A stretch of DNA of 64,000 bases from Magallana gigas (Eukaryota). The first letter of the stretch is position 1. Every line of letters starts with the position of its first letter. This document shows, piece after piece, positions 35,401 to 56,400 of this stretch. The stretch is taken from NCBI RefSeq assembly GCF_963853765.1, contig NC_088855.1, positions 23,498,001-23,562,000 of the forward strand. The letters run 5' to 3'. The notes beneath the pieces were generated by a model that saw only the letters and a list, made by a program, of their open reading frames with translations, did not search any database and had not been told where the DNA came from. A program made the position numbers and the translations under genes.

Positions 35401-38400
35401 GGAGGATAACAGTTGAAATTGACACCCCTCGAAAACCATTGTCAACCTCCGCTTCGCGTCGGTTGACAATGGTTTTCTCGGGGTGTCAATTTCAACTGTT
35501 ACCCTCCCAAACAGGCACTATTTATATAATGTTACCCGTTGCTAAGTGCTTTGCTAACGCTGAGGGTAATAGAACGGATTATGAACTGTGTCTTAACCAA
35601 TCAGATTTCAGTATTTAACATGAAAGTATAACAATAACATTTGCCTATGACTAAATCAATTATGTTAAGTTAGTAAAATTCACCAAATTACTGTTAATGT
35701 ACATAAGTATGCTAGCTAAAAGAAACAGCCAAATCGTCTCCTGTGAGACATCATCATGAATATTTCGTGCAGTCCGTGATTTTTCTTAGGTCGCTGTAGG
35801 TTTCGACCAATCAATAAACATGGTGTGTCGATTTCAGTCCTGTCAGTTTTTTTGTCAAGTTCAGCCGCTGTAGATTTCGACCAATCGATAAATGGGATAT
35901 GTAGATTTCATTCTGGCTGTTTCTTTAGAGCTATGATTTAACTATATAAGTTTCTGTAAGAAATAGAGGATATAATACGTGGTAGATGTAAATATATATT
36001 CCTAAGCGACAAATTGAATTAAACTGGTTTGATTATGATTCGGATTTTTGGGGGTGGTAACGATCCGATTCATATAGAAATAAGGGAGAAAATGCTAAAT
36101 ATCTTTAAATGTCATTGGCGAAATAAAATAATCAAATGTAATACTGTTAGCACACTCTAATTTCTTCGACCAAGCCAGTGTTTCATTAGAAAAGACCAAT
36201 ACAGAGATATATACAGTTACTAGCGGGGATATATAGCTTACTCGCTATTAAAAAAAAAAACCAAAAAAAAAAAAAACCCACCAAAACACCTCAAACAGAC
36301 AAAGCTTGAGTCTCTCTTTCAACTTGATTATGTAGATATATAATAAAATAGTTTTGAATACAGCGGACTGTAGATAATGAACGCACCGGGTGCCGTCTCT
36401 CTCTCTTTTCCTAGTTTTTTTTTACGGAAGTATTGACCTTTAGTCTATGTTGTGGTCTTTGCAATATGATAGTCCGTTTGAGACTTCAGCATACTAGTCC
36501 ATCATCAACCTACACGTGTCCCGACACAAAGGGGGGAGAGGTAGCCACACTATAGCCAAGTCCCATCTTAATGTCATGAACGGAGGGTGACAATGGCGTT
36601 ATATAATCACCACAGAAAGTAATGCTGGGGAACCTTTCACAGAAAGTAATTAAAAGTATTCCCTCGATTCTAGCAACAGCAAAATTACTCATTTTCCCAA
36701 ATAGCTGTAATGACAATCAAATCTGGCTGGGTTTCTCACGTTAGCGTTAATTATACGTCCGCGGTAATAAAAACTCTCCCTAGTTTGTTATGTGTGTATG
36801 GTTTTTTGCTACTACTAAATGCTTGATCAAAAACCTCAAGTCAATCCAATTCTGTGCTTTCAGGTTTTGTCCCAGCGTGTTTTTCTATTTGGCGAGTGTA
36901 GTGCCCGCCATTTGGTTCTTAGAGCTGCATGCAATGGAGGACCGGATAGAAGAAAAGGCTGAACAAGAACGATTTAATATAACTACACAAAACCAGAACA
37001 GATCCGTGGAAGATTTAAAGATTATTATTAAAGATTTGGGGGTAAGAGGAATTCATATCGACACACTGGTTAATGCTCGACAAAAGTACAAAACATTTTA
37101 TTAATCTCGAAATTTTCTTTGATTTTAGAAATAAGGTTACATTACTTTTCAAATATCATCTTTTATTCAATCAGATAAATCAATAAGCATAACAGTGCGT
37201 GTACTTTAACACGAAGTGACGTCAGGAATCTATAGCCGGTATTTAGGAAATATCGGAGAGGCAGACAAATGGGGGGGGGGGGGGGGGGGCACCTGGCCAC
37301 TTAAAATAATTCTATTATAAATGTATGATAATAGCGTCATTTCACAACGCTCAAGAAAACATTTTATGCCTTGCATATTGTACAGATTTTATAAGTACAA
37401 AATATGCATCTTAAAAATCGGTGAAAGAAACCTAATTTCTCTCATATTTGCACTCTCTTAAACCGTTATTTTTTACACAATTGCGTTTGTAAAAACTTTG
37501 ATCAGGATTTATGTATTCAACACACCACCTTACTGCAGTTAATATTTTCTTTAATTCTGAGAAGTGTTTCAGTAAACAAATAAAATGAAAACATCAGGAT
37601 TTCTTCTTTTTTTTTTGGGGGGGGGGGGGGGGGGGTAAGAACATTAGACCTTTTATTGTTGTTTTACTACATATACATTTTTATATTGTAAGTATGATAT
37701 GAACAACTGATATCTTTTGTATCTTTAGATTGATTTTAGTTTCCCGTTGTCCTTGACCGCTGACCTTTGGCTGCGTGTCCTTGAGCAGTTTTTGCTGCTG
37801 ATGCTGATAGTCGGACGCTGGGTGCTTCCTAAAGGGGCGCTGTCACATGATCAGTTATCACAGCTCCTATTGGTTTATGTTGGCACTGCGGCTGATATTG
37901 TTGAATTCTACGAAGCATTTAATGAGGAGGCGGTAAGTTTGAATTATTGAATATTTTCACACAAAACATAGAACACAAAAACATATGTATTAAAGCAGTC
38001 ATGTTGTACATTTTAAATTACACTCACGTTTGTCCTAATTATATAAACTTCGCTCTTACAATAATTCATAGGCAAGTACCAATAACCATTTTAGGTAAAG
38101 TACAATCCATTGTTGATATATATTCTCCTTGGTATATGGACCATGAGCCTGCTTCAGTTCACGTTGGTCGTCACGGCAACGAGAGCACGGCGAGATCTTG
38201 TCGGCGTTCCGAGTGGACTAATCCTGGCAATGAAAGAAGAAGCGCCAAGCTGTTGCAATCCGGAAATCTACGGAATCATCGTGTCAATTCTGATGCAAGA
38301 TTGTCCCTTTCTTGTGATTCGGCTGCTTTTGATATTTTACTACCATGTTGTGAGCTATACAAATATGTTTTTCACTTCCAAAAACTCGTTGGTAATTCTG

Positions 38401-38676
38401 TTACTCTTGTACAGAGTGGTCGTTATTCAGACAACCGACAAAAAGAAATCTCGTTCGTCTGGGTTGACTACGCGAGAAAAGAGTGTAGAGGAGCTCCAAT
38501 CTAAGAGCAATATTGAAGTTCACAACCTTCTCCACTCCAGCAAAAGTGCTCCAAACGTGTCCATAATCAACGGCAATTCGGCGTTCCGTTCGTTTGACAG
38601 CCTGCCCATTGACGTCACCACTGATGTCATCGTTGGAGTCGAAGGATTAGTGGACGACACAAATCGTAATCTGTAG
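32450..38676 (+). CDS. TMEM26: Transmembrane protein 26-like
   Basis: Exons 32450-32640, 36864-37041, 37729-37932 and 38095-38676 join in frame. Motifs: [88 protein letters not shown]. Confidence 0.92.
34733..34889. mobile_element. Short imperfect palindromic element
   Basis: AACAATAAAAAGCTTTCTTT...AAAGAAAGCGTTTTATTGTT with a central CCGCGTTAGCGG hairpin. Confidence 0.55.
34894..35637. repeat. Interleaved inverted-repeat element A-B-C-B'-A'-C'
   Basis: A (34894-35040, itself a hairpin) and B (35041-35152) recur inverted at about 35263-35529. C (35154-35262) recurs inverted at 35528-35637. Confidence 0.8.
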
Positions 38677-43482: not shown

Positions 43483-44586
43483 TGGAAGAATAAGAATTAT
43501 CAGGAAAAACAGCATTCCACTTCATCACCCGGTTAATTTGTTATATATTGAGCACTACGAGTTTAATAAATAAAATACTAGTATGTTTTGTTGACTGTAG
43601 TTGGCTATTTTTTTTTTTATCTAAGATCTGTTGGCACTTGATTCCTTAGAATACAATATCAAAACATTCTTTCTTTTAGGATTTATGTCCGTATAAAGGT
43701 AGCGAACAATACAGATAAAAACAGATAACCTGCATCAGCAATGATCGCTAACTTCATACACACATGATCCATCAAATATTGCATAAACCCCCAAGAAAAA
43801 AGAAATAAGCTGAATCTTTATATTTGCATTCCGAATCTCTCCTTGGTCACTGTCTAAATTAATTTTATGAAATAAAAGTTTATTTGAACGGACTAAAAAC
43901 TGTAAACGTGCCATTCCTTGGGGGGGGGGGGGGGGGGGAGGGGGGGATCTTCTCAATACAAGTTCGACATTGTGATGTTTTTATAATTCATCCCTTGTCC
44001 ATACATATTTTCTTATGTCGTCATTTCTATTGTCGTAATAAAATCATAGATTGAGACAATCACATCTGAGAACAGCTGATTTAATGGCAACATTCAGAGT
44101 TTCACCGATGACATCCTCAGAAGCACCAATCGTCACCCAAAGAACGCAAAGCATAACTCTCTCTCTCTCTCTTTCTCTCTTTACTTCCTCATTTGGATAC
44201 CTTAGATTTGTTATAGTTAAAATTATATTCTAGCAGCTCTCAGCATTTATTTTTTAAATTTGGGAAGGACTCCGAAACGAAAGTTGATTTCTGTTAGAAA
44301 ACATACTCCAAAAAGGAGTTTGGCGCCTGGGCACTTATATCAAAACAACTCATTTTTACGCGAAAACAGGGCTCTTAGGAAATTACAACATGAAATCGTG
44401 GACTTAATACTCAGTAGATGTAAATCTTTGTTTATGAATAACAGTAACAATCTCCTTATTTATTCAAAGAACTATAATTATATACACCTGTAGCAAGCGA
44501 TTGCATAAATCTACGAGTGAATTTTCAAATAAACTACAAAGAGGCATTAATATCATACATGTAAAATTTTTACAACATACAAAATT

Positions 44587-47500
44587 TTATTTAATTTTAA
44601 GATATTTTGCGAAAGCCAGCATCGTGGTAGAATATGTATAAGCGTCAGAGGACCAAAAAGGGAAAAACCCTGTGGGAGAACCTCGAGGGTTAAACCCGGG
44701 AAAATCTATGGGGGTTTTCTCGCCAAAGTGTCTTTGGGAAAGCAGGATGTTATATTGTTCATCTGACAAGGTCCCCTCGAATCCGACCAGGAAGAGTCCG
44801 TCTGGAAACATGTCGTCATTGAAACTGGTTCCGTTCAGATATTCCTTCCGGTTGGCTGGATACCAAAATGGCAAACTCTGTAAAAGGTTCAAAAGATGTA
44901 AGAGAAATATATACGAGTAGTTTAAAATTTATGAAATACTTACGTTCTTAAGGTAAATAACAATGACGTTAAATAGTGGAAAACGTGATAGAGCCGAACA
45001 GACATACACGTACAAATGTAAGGAAATGCAAAATAATTTGATACGGAGACGAGTCAAAGAATTTAGAATGTTTATTGAAACAACATTAATCAGAATGTTG
45101 GAAGTACAAAAAACGGCCGTAAGAAGAAGTAATGTTAATATCGTTGCATCAAAATTTACCACTTCACGAGTTACTTCATCAATTCGAAACGCAGATCATT
45201 TCTTGTGAAAGTGATTTTCTATAGCTATTGTAAAAACTGAATATGAATATTTTACCATTGACTCAAGGAAGTATGTTGCTGTCTATCAGTTTGCCTAATG
45301 TATTATATGTGATTGTGTGAAAATGCGATTCTTTGCAAAATTACCGCTTGTCCCTTCCCAGAACCCGAGAAAAAAGCGTTCCAGGGCTTGAGATGTGTAC
45401 CAAGGATGTTATCGTTCAACCATCTCACGCTTTGTTGAATTGTTTCGTTTACCGAGCTGGGTGTGTCTGACAATGATACAAACATACTTTTTGTAACAGA
45501 AATGCCTATCAAACAGGAGGCAAATCAATTAAGATTTATAAACACATGTTTTGTTCATAATAACTTGTACATAAGAGCATCCTCCAAAAGAAAAAAATAA
45601 CATTGCTGAATTGTAAATTCAATGCGTGGATTTTTTTTTTAAATTTCAGAAATATATATGGTTAAGTTAGATGTTGCAAAGATCTCAGAATTTAAAGTTA
45701 AAATCACATGAGCACAACTTACTATTCAAGAAAGCAAGTGTATCGCCCTCTGTTGACGTCCAGATATTTATAAGTGTGTTAACGGCCATTGATGTCGTAA
45801 ACAGCCTATCTTCTGCATATTTCTGGGGGAAAAAATCCAAGATGATTAAATGAATTTTCTATCTATTTTATCAATGTTGTTTCAAAATGAAATCCAATTT
45901 AGCACTTTCGAAAGGATTATAATCCTTACAATAGCATTTCCTTTTATGTCAAAATCCCCGTCTCCCAAAAAGTCGTCAAAATATATTCCTCCATCTGCCG
46001 ACTTACTGGCTTCTTGTAAAATGTCCGCAGTTACTTTGTTCCTCATAGCACCCTCTAGCTTTTGCAACACATCCTCTAGCATCTAATAATTGAAAGACTA
46101 AACCCATCAAAATGACATTCATTCATATTTCTAGCTCATTGGTACTTGTTTTAAAGTTATAAGATAAATTAATTAAATGTCATAGAAATCGGTTAGTATG
46201 ACACAGACTGCAGCTATAGCAAAAGAAATGAAAGACGTAAAGAAAAACAAACTATCCATATTCAGATTAGCCAAATGAATCTATGTGGTACCTTGAGAGA
46301 AAGAGGTGCCTTTTTGTAGAAATCTCGTAGAATGGTCAATGTTCTGGACGTAAACCAAAAACACTCTAGTTTGGACGGATAATACGTCAGAGCCAAGTCT
46401 CGCCGAGACGAGAAGTTTCCCGTGATTTCGTAGATGATCAGATCCACGGTATCTTTGTAAATATGCTACAAAAATACCAGAATTCCTTGGATTAAATATT
46501 AATTTCATGTGAATCTTAGTATTGTCTAGAAGAACAAAGCAACTTTTCGTCTCAAACCTGGATATCACTGTCAAAATCAGTGGGCTTAAACAGGCCAGAG
46601 AGCAGAGCAGACGTCAGGCCGTTTACAGTGTTAGCTGCAACCGTGACGTCAACGTTATTGACGAAGAACGGCATGGCGACACCTTTATCGCTCAGCGCCA
46701 TTGCCTCATCCACATTCTGAATCTATAAAACATCAACAACATGGATATATCTGTGTACTCGATTATGGGAACATCCATCACGCACATCCCTTCTCTGCAG
46801 TGTATCAGTTGACTGGCACATTAAAGTAGCGTTGCAAAGTGTTGGAAAACGCAGTTATCGAAAATGGTTTTAAAATTCAATTGGCCTCACAATCTTTCAT
46901 ACATCATCCTCTGAGTAGAGTAAAATTCTCAATAGACGCATCGCTGGCCAAACTTTAGTTAGTAAGAACAAACATGTCTTACCTACAAACTTATTTTTTT
47001 TTTGCAATTCAAAGGAATTGATGGGATGGACTTTTTAGCTTCTTTAGCTTACACAAAACACTAAAACCTTTCAATTTAGCTTACCCATGTCGGGACAAAT
47101 GCAGCATCTGTTTTATTTGTGGCGGCCAAAAACTTGTGAAGATAGAAGTAGGTTCTGGGATCAATGGTGTTAACACGAGTGTTGTTAGAGTGGGGTCTGT
47201 AGGCGTATCTCTTCAGCGCGTGCAGGACCGAGGTAAGGTTTGAATTTGTGGATTGCCATTTTGCAAACAAATCACTGTAACCTGGAATTTCCTTCAACAA
47301 TGAACCAAGTCCAATATTGACAAAGGTATCGTCAAAATCTGGTGGAATGTGGAAGGCTGCAGCGAACATATCTCTGTGAAAAGGCAACAAATCCGTTATA
47401 TTCATTTCATCAGGCATAAAGCACCGTTTTTCAAAGTGAAGAGACCAACTGGCTTGTATGTTTATTTTTCTATAGTTAATTATATAGGTTAAAGGAACAT

Positions 47501-48490
47501 TTTTTTCTTAAAAATATAGGAGGGACAAGACCTCCATTTTTTAAGTATTTATTTTCTTGCTTAAGGTCTACATGTACTAACTTTTCGTGCAGTAGATGGT
47601 CCATGACTGTTGCTATGTCACCGAGGCCCATCAGCTTCAGTAACTCTTCCACAGATTTCACCGGAAACTTGTCCGATAGCTGGAAGAGCTGTAACAGATT
47701 TTCCGGGGTACTCTGCCATTTTTTGACGGTATCGTTGTATAGCTGAGGCCAAAACGTCATCACCGATGTGTTGTAATTCACGTTCTTGTCGTGATATTTT
47801 CCTACAAAAACGATGTCATATATCGCATGTCATAAAGTAAAATAATGAAATGCAGTTTGTATAGTTATCTCTTTACAGTTTAACATGCATAGAAGGTAAG
47901 GGTAATGTCAATTTTAAGAAGTCTTGCAAGAATTGGCAAAAGTTTGGAAACTTCAAACTTTTTTAATATTTAGTTGGTAAATTTTAATGCTTAATGCCCA
48001 TATAACTTATTTTGCAGGACAAAGTACTAGTATTATATTTCACAGTGTTTGTGTCGCACTATAATGTACATGTGAACATGAATTTGAGAAAGAATGAATA
48101 CTGTATACCAATAGCATCCAAAGCTAGATCTATTTGTTCCCTTTTTGGTTTAAACTCTCCACCCAATGCCCGGATCTCTAAAAGACAAGCTGTAATCCAT
48201 GCTGTCACAAACATGTTGTTGTCATTCACGGCAAAGTTCTTGCGGATCGCAACCATTTCTGGAGCTCCATGAAAATTTAATTTGACCACGCTTTCATAAG
48301 TTCCTTTGTCCAGTTTCCAAGGTAACACAAGTGACGATTTCTTATCCTCCTTGGGTTGACGTTCTTCTACCTTGGAACTCAGAGCTACAAGTGTGTCTTT
48401 TATTGTCTTTTTGAACAAAAATCCGTCTGATTTGTCTATAAAAGGAAAAAGAATCACCAACAAAAGTATAAATTGTCCAGGGAAATTCAT
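44587..48490 (-). CDS. Uncharacterised secreted glycoprotein, 631 aa, with DxDD motif; possible class II terpene-cyclase-like (alpha/alpha)6 fold
   Basis: Nine phase-consistent exons (minus strand): 48109-48490, 47582-47801, 47085-47373, 46558-46722, 46292-46465, 45930-46082, 45723-45822, 45345-45466, 44587-44877 (1896 nt). Hydrophobic N-terminus MNFPGQFILLLVILFPFIDKSDG. The confidence value refers to the gene model; the function is inference. Confidence 0.88.
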
Positions 48491-49111
48491 CTTGCCGGTC
48501 TGAAGGTCGCGCCTTATCTGGCAAAGTATTTTGTAACAGACGATCTAGGTGTTTCTAAAGCGTTCATAACAACTAGTACGGAGAATTTGATAATAATTTT
48601 CGGAATATGAGTCTCAGACTTCGATAAATTCTTCGTGAATGGAAACTACAGTCACTTACTATACATTATCTTTACATGTATTTCAATACACTTAACAATG
48701 AGATAATCAAGATGAGAACTGTTAAGTCCAAACCACACCGGACTTTATTGTGCAGGGTCTGTTTTGGAAACTTTACCTCATATTCGGTGATTTTCTGTGA
48801 CATTCGAGATAGGTCTAAAATACACGCAATTAACGTTGGCATTGTAAGTTACATTTCATTTTCTCGTGCACCATCGGGACATGATGGAAAATGTCCCATA
48901 AAACTCTCTTTTTATGATATGCTAATTGAATAAAACACTTTGAACATATTTTTCCAAAATGAATGAATATATGTTCATGCAAGAACTCTTAATATAGATA
49001 CAGTACAACAAATATACATATACCATGATCTTTGACATTATCTTCTATACTGGCACGCCAGTATAGTCAAAATCCATGATCCAATGTTTTTCACGTTTAG
49101 ATGGGAAACAT

Positions 49112-51263
49112 TGACGCACTATGACGAACACTCGGAGAGCATGTTTTGCAGTATTCATTCTTTGTGGATTATCGTCACTCTTGTGTAGGTTTCCTTAATA
49201 ACCATCATTTTATTATACAAAATATAATTGGACGTCTCTTTCTCTTGTTAATCAATATGGCCTTAGAAAAACTTACGATGCATGCATGTTTTCAAGTGTT
49301 TCAGACAAATATTGGAAGAAACAACAGCATTCCCAAAATGAAGCCCTTGTTATTCACACGAGAAATGAGAGAACAAAATCAACGTATGTACAAAAAAAAG
49401 GAAGAAAGAAATTCAGAGAAATATAGATTGGTCCTAGGATATTACGTTTTGATTCGGGGGATGGAGTACCATTCATCATGAAGTTGAACATTTTTTTTTG
49501 GTTAAATTCTCTTTTCCTGATTCTATGTAAAACTTCACGAGACAAATTTACAAGTTTGGGATGGGTTATATACCACTCCTCGTCATCTTCCCCGACTGTT
49601 TTACGCTAAGTTGAAGGAACACTTCTAAAATATTTTTTTTCCGGATCCATCACTAACCAATATTTTTCTATTACCAAAAAGGGTAGATAAGTCACTGTGC
49701 ATTGTCCTGGTTAATATTAATTTTAGCAACCACCTCCACTATTCAAAACCTACGATCCCAAGATGGATTCTGGCAATATGAATTTCCTTGAGCAGTTTAA
49801 TTACACATGTACGCTTGCAGTGTCAATAAAATATGTGGGGTTGGGGCAAGGGTATGGAAGGGGTTATAATGGAATATAATTTTCCTATATATTTTTTCTA
49901 AAATTTTCGATGAATCATGTTTTAGTTATTTGTACATTTGGTGTTTTGAATAGAACCTATAAAGAAACAGAACAAGGTGTCCAAGATTCTGCTGATGACG
50001 TACATGAGGAGCGGGTCGTCTTTCGTTGGAGAACTGCTGAAGTTCGGAGGAAACGTTTTCTATGTGTACGAACCATTCTGGTCGGTGTACGAGAAAACCT
50101 TCCGGACCGATACGGAAGTCTGCCACCGGAACGGAACTTGTCAGTAAGACGACTTTGTAAATTACAATAACAATATAATATTATTGCATACTGAAAAATC
50201 AACATTTATTCGCGACAACGTATTTTCGCGATGGATTAGTCATATAACGTACATATTACAAATTCTTGAAATTTGAACTTTTTTTTGCCATTGAAAGACT
50301 AGATCGTAACTATATTTTTTTTTCGCACATGAAAATGAAAAAAAAATAGTTTTGAGGAATAACATCAAAATATATTTTTGTTCCTTTTTTTTTTTAAAAA
50401 GAAAACCGTCCAAAACATTACAGAAGACAGATAAAACTATTGACATTATCAGTGCCATTTTTGACTGTCGAATTTCTGAGCTGCCCATTGAGGTTTTGAA
50501 GAGTTTCACGACCTTCCATTTCACGAGCGGATACAGCAGACGATGTAAGTCAATCCTAAAGAAAAGACAAACGTGGAAGTCACGCAGGAAAAAAGTGTAT
50601 GACAACAAAAAAGAATGGTGTCTTTCTCGGTGGGAGAGAGCTTGCAAAACAGCTACGGCCCGAGTCATCAAGACCATTCGTCTGTCGCCAAGACTCCTGA
50701 AGAAGACTGATCGGTTATCTGATGTAAAAATAGTCCATTTAACTCGTCATCCTTTGGGCATTTTGAATTCTCGCATGAATATCGGAGAAGTAAATAGCAG
50801 CAACTTTCTCTCGTCTGCTCGACATTTGTGTCAAATGATGGGACAAGATGTTCTTTATGTAAAGGATAAAGTGAAAAACGGTAAAGAAGATACAGTTGTT
50901 CCGCTGACCTTTGAGTGCTTGGCTTCGAACCCGACGGATGTGGTGAAAAATATGTTTGCTTCTCTTAATTTGAATTATTCAAGAGATACGGAAAAATGGA
51001 TAGCAGAACATACAAATTACAGCAGTCTAAAGACGTTTAACAATGCTAAAGAAGGATCGGTTCAAAATATAACTCATGATCCACAAAATACTAAACAAAC
51101 AAACGGCACGTTCCACGTGCGGAAAACAATGTCCAAAGAGATATCCAGTGCTTGGAGAAGCAGTCTCTCCATAGACTTGATAAAAGATGGAGAACAAGTC
51201 TGTGAAATTGTTTTGAAAGAAATCGCATTCTTGGTTACGAGAAAGGAAAATTCAGTGTGCTAA
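49112..51263 (+). CDS. Carbohydrate sulfotransferase (CHST1/3-like, Golgi type II); 5' exons tentative
   Basis: Exon 49954-50143 encodes KILLMTYMRSGSSFVGELL...VFYVYEPFW (5'-PAPS-binding loop). Exon 50402-51263 encodes VIKTIRL and KIVHLTRHPLGILNSR (3'-PB). A candidate signal anchor, MTNTRRACFAVFILCGLSSLL, starts near 49112, but I could not join it in phase unambiguously. Confidence 0.85.
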
Positions 51264-53455: not shown

Positions 53456-56400
53456 TTACAATGGATCATTAGCATGCTTGATATTATGAGACGCGATCTG
53501 TGCCGGACCAAGCACTGCATAGTTACATTCACTCTTCATGCAATGATAATGTGTTTGCTTCAGTTCGTACGGACACCTGGAGACCTCGCATTTCTCATTG
53601 ACCCCGATCTTCTTGAACCCCTGCGAGCTGATGTTGTCTAGCTTGGTGTGGTATTTTCGGTGAGTGAGAACTTTGCTGGAGTCGGTGCAGTTGTAGTTGC
53701 ACTTGAGACAGTGGAAGTGGGAAGCCTTGCCTTCGTACTCGCATTCATCGCGTCCACAGGGCTGGTTCATACGAAACTGCTGCATTTCCCCACCAGTCAG
53801 ACTGTCGATTCGCTCATGTCTTAACGTGTGCTGTATGAGGCGAGAACGATCACTGAAGCTGTATCCACAGTCTGGGCGCGTGCAGTGGAAATGCGTGATG
53901 CCCTGGCGATACGCACATTTAACAAAGTTACAGTCATCCTTGTGTCGAACACGGATATAACCTTCAGGAATGCTGTCATCTTTGCCACTTTTGGTGCTTA
54001 TTCCACCATCGCTTATCCTTCTTTGCTTGACTGCTATTTCACCACTGTCCACAAAATCATTATGTCTGGTTCTCATACGTTTCCTCCCTGATCTTTTAGA
54101 AATACTTGTGACATTGTTTGACATTTTACTCTCTTCTTTTGAGGCTTCTAAACTACTTTCATCCATAGTACTCTCCTCTTCATAGTGGTTGCTATTTTCA
54201 GTTTCAGATATGACTAATTTCCCATCCATACTTTCATACAGATTCATACTACTCTGAAGATCTGATGTGCCATGAGTTTTCTGAGCTTTGGCAATAAGAC
54301 TGGAGAAAGTGGATGGATTCAGATTCAGAGAATCTGAAGCATTCAGCTCCCCATCAAGTGAGTTGTGTTCATCATCAGAGCTCTGGGCTGACCTATGCGC
54401 CCTCTTATTTGTTGGAACATGTCCTTGATCATGATTCATTATGGCTTGTATTTGGTCAGGCTTTGGTGCAATGGTAATGGGACAGACAGCTTTCCCAATG
54501 ATTTGCTGGGAATCATTCTTTCCGAATTTCAATCCATGCTTTGAAATGTGTGCCTTGACTCTATTCATGTCGGAGAAAGCTTGATTGCACTCGAAACAAT
54601 GATAGTGGTCCTTCTTCTTTAGCTTGCAAAATGGTCGCCCACAGTTCTGATCCAATCCATAATGCATCTTATTCTTCAGGTCAGACCAGGTGGGTTGTGG
54701 AATGGTGTTCCCTCCTTGCTGTAGAAGAACAGCCAAAGGTAGAGGGTGTCCTGTGCTGGATATCATTCCAGTTGCAGCAGTAATTATGGTTGGTGTGATA
54801 CCCGCAGATACCATAGGGACAGCTGTGATTGCCCCGGACACAGCCATCGGATGAAAAATGGTGGCATCTACTGCAGTGGATACTTTGTCACTGGACTGTC
54901 CTGATGAAAGGCTTGACAAGGGATAAAAAGTTCCTGATGTTTTGATCAAGCCCTTGGCATCAGCAGGAGCAATGGGAATAAATCCAGCTATGGAGGTATT
55001 GTCAGTGAGTGAGAGAGTTGGATCTTCTTTGTTTGTGCCATTTACTTCAGTGTTTTCGTGCTTCTTGTTGTGTTGCATCATGGTGCTGTGGCGAACAAAG
55101 GAATAGTCACATTTGGGTCTGACACAGTGGAAGTGGCGATTGGCTTTGTTGTTGTGGCAATGCGGTCTGCGGCAATTGACATTTCTATCAAAGAATTCAA
55201 AGCCCTCATGAATCGTCACAAAGCTATGGAAATCTTTTGCGTGCAAATTGAGAACATCCAGTCGATCGGTGGCCTGGTAGCAGCGAGGGCGAGCGCAGTG
55301 AAAATGTTCCTTCCCCCTGTACAAACACAACTCGTCCGGGCAGGGATTGTCCTCTTCAAACTTTTTAAATCCATTGATCACCGTCGGGTTTTCACACGAG
55401 GGATTCAGTATTTCAGACTCTGTCAGTTCCACTTTCGGAATAACAGGTATAGTATTTCTGGGATACTTGGGTGGTCGACCTCTTTTACGCGGTGTATCCT
55501 CTGCAGACTTTGGCGAAGACTTGTACGTTTTTCCGGCTGAGCTGCGCGCATACTCGTGGATCCTATAGTGTTCAAGTCTCCCAAATGTGGGGCCTTCATG
55601 GGGTACAACATGTGTGCAGCCAGACTACAAAAAGAAGTAATAAATTCAAATGAAACCCAGCTTATTTTTTATGAGATAACATAAATCAAAACATGTCAAT
55701 CAGAAATTATATATGCATTTGAAACTGATGCTATGCATTACCCAGATGCAGTGATAATGTGTCTGCTTGTTGCTGTACTGACAGTTCTCTGGGCACGTGT
55801 CTGTGTCGGAATACATAACATAGGCGACAGGAGTGATACGGTCTTGTAGTTCATGAAATCTATAACCAAAAAAGAGATTTAATAAAAAATCAATGAAATC
55901 ATAAAAAACACTCAAGACAGAAGCAAACCCACAAAATTATATCTTACTGACCCTTTAAGAAAACCTAAAAAATTGGACTTCATAAACATGAATGATTCAA
56001 TGGTAATACAACTCAAGAACCTACCTGGCATGTTCGCGGACACCATCTTTTGATTTGAACAACACCAGACATCCCTCTACTCGACAATGGTAGTGGTCCT
56101 TGTAAAGGTACTGACAGCGAGAGTTACACGGGTCATTGGCTGTGTACCTTAAATAATTGAAAAAGACAAAAATGAAGATAAATTGACTACTACAAGTTTA
56201 TCAAGCAAGTCTTCGAATTTATGCAAAAATAAAAACAAATTCATGTGTTTTGATATTGTTTCAGTACCTGATGAGGTAGTTTTTCCAAGATTCATCTCTC
56301 TCTTTTCGCTCCTGAGTGTTGTTAGCTGCAGTCTTTGATAACAGCAGCGGTGTATTTGGTTGTGGGATGGGGACATTCAACCCTTGGGCTAAACTTGTCT

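Follow-up and report, generated by a model that had tools for sequence, protein, structure and literature searches.

Gene structure, transcription and encoded protein

The window analysed here is a stretch of 64,000 nucleotides of Magallana gigas DNA, to which all positions refer. Its minus strand carries, at 44587-48490, the coding sequence of a gene of nine exons (48490-48109, 47801-47582, 47373-47085, 46722-46558, 46465-46292, 46082-45930, 45822-45723, 45466-45345 and 44877-44587). Joined across introns that are all of the GT-AG type, these exons form an open frame of 1896 nt that encodes a protein of 631 amino acids, followed by a stop codon. The gene is real and expressed. RNA contigs from runs X2, X7 and X14, derived from two transcriptomes of a single study and one oyster metatranscriptome, skip the introns and cover the 5′UTR, the nine exons and the 3′UTR on the minus strand (~44486..48578). 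All eight splice joints occur in these contigs at the exact positions predicted, and three of the eight are also present in raw poly-A reads (X20), so that the clean nine-exon gene proposed by the initial annotation is confirmed at the RNA level. The RNA samples differ from the assembly by several SNPs. A public collection contains a protein derived from a transcript (P0186) that is 98.7% identical to the product of this gene over the full 631 residues, with eight substitutions and none in the motifs; it stood in for the spliced product in the protein-level analyses.

The N-terminus has the organization of a typical signal peptide, as had been proposed, with a short n-region, a 12-residue hydrophobic core (FILLLVILFPFI) and then DKSDG. 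This segment spans approximately residues 1-23 (48422..48490, minus strand), has low pLDDT in the structural model and is a family-wide feature, signal-like N-termini being found in 100 of 117 homologues, one of them bacterial. N-glycosylation sequons are present, as the initial annotation stated, but they number nine and not eight, since NNT occurs twice. Their enrichment is modest, given a mean of 5.2 ± 2.0 in shuffled sequences (p ~0.06).

Conserved motifs

Six motifs had been singled out in the protein, and both they and their DNA coordinates are correct: MTFWPQ, HIPPDFDDT, IDPRTY, NNVDVTVAAN, ALTYYPS and CFWFTSRTL begin at residues 142, 209, 271, 319, 377 and 387, respectively. Conservation was counted in an alignment of 117 homologues (A1), which also served as the basis for structure prediction. 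Only five columns of this alignment are invariant, namely D213, D215, P261, D272 and Y381. Two of them belong to the DxDD motif DFDDT (residues 213-217; 47325..47339, minus strand), in which D215 is the putative proton donor according to its conservation and the alignment of the truncated model described below. D213 and D215 are thus kept in 117 of 117 sequences, D216 is Asp in 111, and T or S occupies position 217 in 116. The rare replacements of D216 (C, S or T) echo the DxDT and DCTAE variants.

IDPRTY (residues 271-276; 47148..47165, minus strand) lies at the N-terminus of helix 273-286 and contains the invariant D272, accompanied by I271, R274 and Y276, each at least 90% conserved. In NNVDVTVAAN (residues 319-328; 46630..46659, minus strand), the same level is reached by N319, N320, D322, V325 and N328, the last being a low-confidence candidate for hydrogen bonding to D215. 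The conserved aromatic motif YYPS (residues 380-383; 46373..46384, minus strand) includes the invariant Y381 and aligns with the FYP of beta-only cyclases. In the structural model, the conserved motifs mark the N-terminal ends of alternating helices (93, 214, 273, 323, 384, 467 and 613), the region in which a toroid of this type would be expected to form its active site. Many of the conserved residues at these inner-helix N-termini are polar (about eight Asp, three Arg and several Asn), and there are aromatic residues among them as well.

Predicted fold and structural neighbors

AlphaFold2 with the A1 alignment yields a confident model (mean pLDDT 95, pTM 0.93) in which an (alpha/alpha)6 barrel, the fold anticipated by the initial annotation, starts at about residue 28. 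Foldseek returned weak top matches that were already beta-only class II cyclases. An exhaustive structure search then placed the cyclase domain of the drimenol synthase AsDMS at rank 1 (score 27.7; rmsd 2.8 Å over 298 residues, 13% identity), in line with the likeness to drimane-type synthases proposed beforehand. Ranks 2-10, with scores of 20.6-24.4, were occupied by PtmT2 CPS, Tpn2, SsDMS, 6IJ1, 8PAJ, Rv3377c, SHC, MstE and human OSC, so that the ten best matches are, without exception, terpene cyclases. Next came the TED domain of CD109 (17.7) and a putative glycoside hydrolase (17.5), the best cyclase and the best glycosidase representative being 10 Z units apart.

Other comparisons point in the same direction. 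In the ESM Atlas, the structural neighbors are the cluster of the family itself (TM 0.93) and then bacterial proteins of ~470 residues (TM 0.58/0.76) that bear the name ‘putative squalene cyclase C-terminal domain’. The neighbors by protein-language model, both for exon 3 and for the entire protein, fall in AstC-like_C and SQHop_cyclase_C clusters. The model thus shows a predicted fold of the class II terpene-cyclase beta-domain type, nearest to the cyclase domain of drimenol synthase. About 300 of the ~600 mature residues of the model align to cyclases. The remainder consists of insertions: four helices occupy 161-207, and segments rich in beta structure lie at 44-76, 128-160, 434-466 and 515-612. 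These insertions recall the long capping loops described for the AsDMS cyclase (PMC12232559).

Position of the putative general acid

The location of D215 was examined with a truncated model (pLDDT 96) that begins at H209, taken as model residue 1, and in which D215 is model residue 7; its register was read from the first aligned residue, on the assumption of no gap in the first seven residues. On this basis, model residue 1 corresponds to residue 370 of SHC (1SQC), 449 of human OSC (1W6K), 103 of MstE, 297 of SsDMS, and 317 or 327 of AsDMS (9MHS/9MLO and 9M7D-F numbering, respectively). D215 would then correspond to SHC D376, OSC D455, MstE D109, SsDMS D303 and AsDMS D323 or D333, and D213, given the same ungapped stretch, to SHC D374. 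These aspartates are the general acids that experiments have assigned in the respective enzymes. In human OSC the general acid is D455; for MstE, D109 is designated as such by the titles of PDB mutant entries; and for SHC, the motif DVDDTA was seen at residues 374-379 in the profile alignment. The general acids of AsDMS and SsDMS are D323 and D303 (PMC12232559), the former being D333 in the other numbering (PMC9128629).

Since model residue 1 always lies opposite the position six residues before the acid, D215 falls on the general acid of SHC, OSC, MstE, SsDMS and AsDMS, and six structures, each with a numbering of its own, give this offset, so that a register due to chance is unlikely. A local likeness in sequence, HIPPDFDDTF in the oyster protein against YYPDVDDTA in SHC, accompanies the superposition. 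As shown by the model, D215, at the N-terminus of an inner helix, occupies the structural position of the class II general acid, and the early reading of the DxDD as a class II-like motif is upheld to this extent.

Relation to known cyclase families

Sequence comparisons are far less telling than structural ones. No Pfam model matches the oyster exons or 20 full-length homologues, even at E values up to 10; this holds for SQHop_cyclase_C/N and Prenyltrans (PF13243, PF13249 and PF00432) and for the HAD domain, the N-terminus being the signal peptide. Precomputed Pfam annotation is empty for every listed family member. Likewise, no Pfam 38.1 family is listed as common to the Atlas clusters of the oyster family, an observation that speaks against a PF28380 match. 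PDB sequences gave noise-level EF-hand matches only, with exon 3 as with the family profile, and a regular-expression search detected no QW motif in the oyster protein. Screening of a word-indexed protein collection with the family profile retrieved family members and no sequence intermediates, and no match emerged when hhalign compared the family with beta-only cyclases taken one sequence at a time. By Pfam and PDB-sequence searches, the protein thus matches no characterised family of another function, and no paper on its family was found in the literature.

A link to beta-only cyclases appears when profiles are compared. For this purpose 80 beta-only PF13243 proteins (A3) were assembled, with a Bacteroidota ORF that has DADDT at residues 104-108 as the starting point. 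The A3 profile itself matches SHC (E 8e-25), with D104, D106 and D107 on D374, D376 and D377, and N175 on H451. In a colinear hhalign of A1 with A3, NNVDxTVxAN aligns with NNxxxHPEVNAN (N328 on N175), YYP with FYP, and EDR with the region of the invariant D314; with greedy realignment, DFDDT aligns with DADDT as well. By this low-confidence step, N328 may correspond, through N175 of the beta-only cyclases, to SHC H451. The comparison has a probability of 12%, an E value of 0.0023 and a score of 34, against 15 for the reversed profile. Block-shuffled controls score 18-41 (n=30), one of the 30 exceeding the real comparison, but such a shuffle is a poor null since the blocks retain their motifs. 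With these weak statistics, the profile link to beta-only cyclases is supportive only.

Comparison with characterised systems places the family apart from each of them. By structure, the nearest kin is the cyclase (TC-beta) domain of the HAD-fused drimenol and drimenyl-diphosphate synthases (AsDMS 9MHS and 9M7D-F; fungal AstC; AstC-like_C, PF28380). AsDMS is a cytosolic enzyme that acts on FPP, whereas the oyster protein lacks the HAD phosphatase domain, has a signal peptide and is ~300 residues larger. Its family has DxDD[T/S] in place of the DxDTT of HAD-fused drimane synthases, to which no sequence-profile link was found. The beta-only class II cyclases (MstE 6SBB; the myxobacterial ‘SHC’ 8PAK/8PAJ; Bacteroidota PF13243 proteins) are cytosolic proteins of ~340 residues with PF13243 and QW-type DGSW repeats, both absent from the oyster family. 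SHC and OSC, 620-730 residues long, are monotopic membrane enzymes that combine a beta with a gamma domain and carry QW motifs, and OSC has DCTAE; the oyster protein is single-domain and without QW motifs, and a six-frame search of this oyster genome gave no PF13243 signal. The GH105/GH88 unsaturated uronyl hydrolases are also among the closest known systems.

Distribution and descent of the family

The initial annotation regarded the protein as an orphan, but it is neither an orphan nor confined to bivalves. A HMMER scan with exon 3 alone collected 222 cluster representatives at E ≤ 0.001, many of them ~630 residues long and matching at about residues 200-300, and homologues number in the hundreds. 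Named members carry the labels ‘uncharacterized’ or ‘hypothetical’. Among animals they are found in many molluscs, with several copies per genome, in Branchiostoma, Patiria and Amphimedon, and in rotifers including Seison; among protists, in Amoebozoa, Apusozoa, Alveolata, Rhizaria, Discoba and Metamonada. Given that it spans most eukaryotic supergroups, the family is not bivalve-specific. The oyster genome has at least three family loci, on the same chromosome, and identity to the Saccostrea and Ostrea orthologues is 77-78%.

Prokaryotic copies are few. One lies on a contig of 69 kb whose T9SS and ECF-sigma genes are of a kind typical of Bacteroidota. A search with a five-sequence alignment retrieved four loci in MAGs, of which two belong to Bacteroidota, one to KSB1 and one to a MAG with the label archaeon; a related-locus search with P0058 alone gave nothing. 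Among 401 evenly sampled Bacteroidota genomes, the sole real match was in G001, the center of the search and a carrier known beforehand, the family profile giving only noise in the others. The neighborhoods of the prokaryotic copies consist of housekeeping genes and offer no functional clue.

In a maximum-likelihood tree of 30 sequences, animals form one clade (SH-aLRT 94) and molluscs another within it (99), and the order of branching among animals is broadly that of the species tree. Prokaryotic sequences lie at various places among the protists, on an unresolved backbone. The single animal clade gives no sign of recent horizontal transfer, including into bivalves, a scenario that had been raised at the outset. 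As judged from these sequences, the family appears old, eukaryotic and vertically inherited, and the tree fits vertical descent in animals.

Proposed function and alternatives

The reading we favor, with somewhat better than even confidence, is that of a class II-type enzyme of the cyclase superfamily, which would use D215 for general-acid catalysis in a secretory or lysosomal compartment, possibly on an isoprenoid. The protein would be a secreted (or lysosomal/luminal), N-glycosylated, single-domain (alpha/alpha)6 barrel of the beta-domain type, whose ~270 additional residues, arranged in loops and helices, probably form a cap over the cavity. It would be an active enzyme, starting catalysis in the manner of known class II cyclases: D215, under the tuning influence of D213 and D216 and with N328 as its probable hydrogen-bond partner, would donate a proton to a C=C bond or an epoxide in the bound substrate, and the resulting carbocation would be resolved by ring closure or hydration. 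An isoprenoid substrate, dietary or endogenous, is the leading guess, and an acidic extracellular or lysosomal compartment the presumed setting.

Several observations speak against a cyclase. The oyster exons and the homologues searched are matched by no cyclase-family sequence model, and QW motifs are lacking. The protein is secretory, unlike known class II cyclases, which are cytosolic or membrane-associated, and we know of no occurrence of their usual substrates outside the cell. The polar conserved residues would suit a sugar or phosphate ligand too, and the spread among phagotrophs and filter-feeders, together with the expansion in molluscs, resembles that of digestive hydrolases or lysosomal enzymes.

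These polar motifs, the secretion and the digestive-like phyletic pattern make a glycan-acting enzyme, which the initial annotation had also allowed for, a real if clearly less likely alternative. According to this alternative, the protein is a carbohydrate-active enzyme with a six-hairpin (alpha/alpha)6 fold (a glycoside hydrolase, an unsaturated-uronate hydrolase or a lyase-type enzyme), secreted for digestion, with the DxDD as catalytic acid/base. Its glycosylation and the family-wide signal peptides would suit such a role, as would the multiple mollusc copies, the phagotrophic protist hosts, the T9SS-bearing Bacteroidota contig, the many conserved Asp, Asn and Arg residues, and two automatic database names, ‘Cellulase’ and ‘GH63 C-terminal domain-containing’. 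It is disfavored by the structural ranking, with ten terpene cyclases ahead and the best glycosidase 10 Z units lower, and by the exact placement of D215 on the cyclase general acid in the truncated model. In addition, no GH Pfam model matches any member tested at E values up to 10, the prokaryotic copies lie outside polysaccharide-utilisation loci, and the six-hairpin families GH105, GH88, GH9, GH63 and GH76 provide neither a family-model match nor the best structural match.

More remote is a non-catalytic binding or carrier protein, for example a secreted binder of lipids or terpenoids, in which the toroid fold would have been put to a new use, as in transcobalamin and the TED domains of complement. 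We hold this to be rather implausible, since over 100 sequences, spanning animals, Discoba and bacteria, share the acid triad, and six other motifs at inner-helix N-termini are conserved too, which is the pattern of an active site; nor is there a thioester motif.

Finally, a bivalve-specific orphan, a gene recently gained by horizontal transfer from a microbe, or a contaminant of the assembly, to which the bacterial origin of the closest solved structure and the full-length members in a few prokaryotic MAGs might have pointed, is refuted by eight spliceosomal introns and expression in oyster RNA, by the homologues and the Saccostrea and Ostrea orthologues, by the animal clade that branches roughly as the species tree, and by the 401 Bacteroidota genomes with their one known carrier.

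Within the favored reading of a class II-type enzyme, a bolder proposal can be formulated. Animals and other eukaryotes might possess, in this family, a second and hitherto unrecognised line of functional class II terpene cyclases, secreted or lysosomal and beta-only, that cyclise or hydrate isoprenoids outside the cytosol, with mollusc paralogues possibly behind the terpenoids of these animals, such as the drimanes of sea slugs. This proposal is tentative, and we regard it as rather doubtful.

Significance

To our knowledge, oxidosqualene cyclase is the one terpene cyclase of the protonation type (class II) established in animals, and we know of no assignment of the cyclases behind many invertebrate terpenoids. 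The family described here is expressed, comprises proteins of ~630 residues with a predicted class II fold, an intact and correctly placed general acid and a secretion signal, and extends from Discoba to chordates. It is invisible to Pfam, and also to the InterPro screens of recent animal terpene surveys, one of which used IPR018333 (PMC13483135). What is new is that the class II cyclase fold includes a secreted, uncharacterised family that no Pfam model covers. If its members act on isoprenoids, the chemistry of terpene cyclisation would reach the extracellular or lysosomal space, and candidate genes would become available for work on mollusc natural products; if glycans are the substrates instead, the active-site geometry of cyclases would have been reused for another acid-catalysed reaction.

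Genomic surroundings of the gene

A 303-aa open frame carrying a Sulfotransfer_1 domain (E 9e-10; 50352-51263 of the window, plus strand) is located ∼2 kb upstream of the cyclase-fold gene on the opposite strand and is a possible neighbour with a function in the secretory pathway. An exon-sized ORF matching Tmem26 (E 5e-28) is found at 38110-38676, plus strand. On the minus strand, an uninterrupted ORF of 658 aa (53456-55432) gives no Pfam match; such a frame is atypical for the surrounding intron-rich region, and it may be an intronless gene or stem from a mobile element. Directly upstream of the 5′ end of the gene, at 48753-48900, one contig of the RNA run X7 aligns and then continues into sequence dissimilar to the window; it probably represents a neighbouring or divergent transcript.

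Within the gene, the conserved DDFLGDGD motif belongs to a segment of exon 6 (aa 404-460; 45930-46082) across which the family profile yields noise-level matches to EF-hand proteins (E 0.5-2). The matches could reflect a calcium-binding loop or mere coincidence.

Paralogues in the oyster genome and a search for oxidosqualene cyclase

The chromosome that carries the gene holds two more paralogues, at distances of 1.0 and 2.4 Mb from it and with 41-60% identity to it per exon. The first (loci L006 and L008) occupies G000:C3:24509000-24527000; the second (L005 and L007; G000:C3:25917109-25954500) seems to extend across more than 30 kb. Among these loci, one exon-3 match contains an in-frame TAA, which may mark an intron or a defect. 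A six-frame search of the whole oyster genome with SQHop_cyclase_C (PF13243) gave no match and thus no oxidosqualene-cyclase signal, although a signal fragmented over several exons could escape such a search.

Unusual gene models and prokaryotic members of the family

Longer gene models (P0055, P0089, P0165 and P0171) combine the family domain with ankyrin repeats in Heterostelium (1249 aa) and with a nucleotide-sugar-transporter domain in Cavenderia (1014 aa), or reach about twice the normal family length in Tegillarca (1105 aa) and Amphimedon (1011 aa). They may be true fusions or adjacent genes that were merged.

Full-length members are also encoded in two Bacteroidota MAGs, one KSB1 MAG and one archaeon-labelled MAG (L013-L016), the copy in the last being broken into three frames, and in a 69-kb Bacteroidota-like contig (L009). 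All are surrounded by housekeeping genes. The scattered positions of these prokaryotic sequences in the tree suggest that the family has moved sporadically between eukaryotes and prokaryotes.
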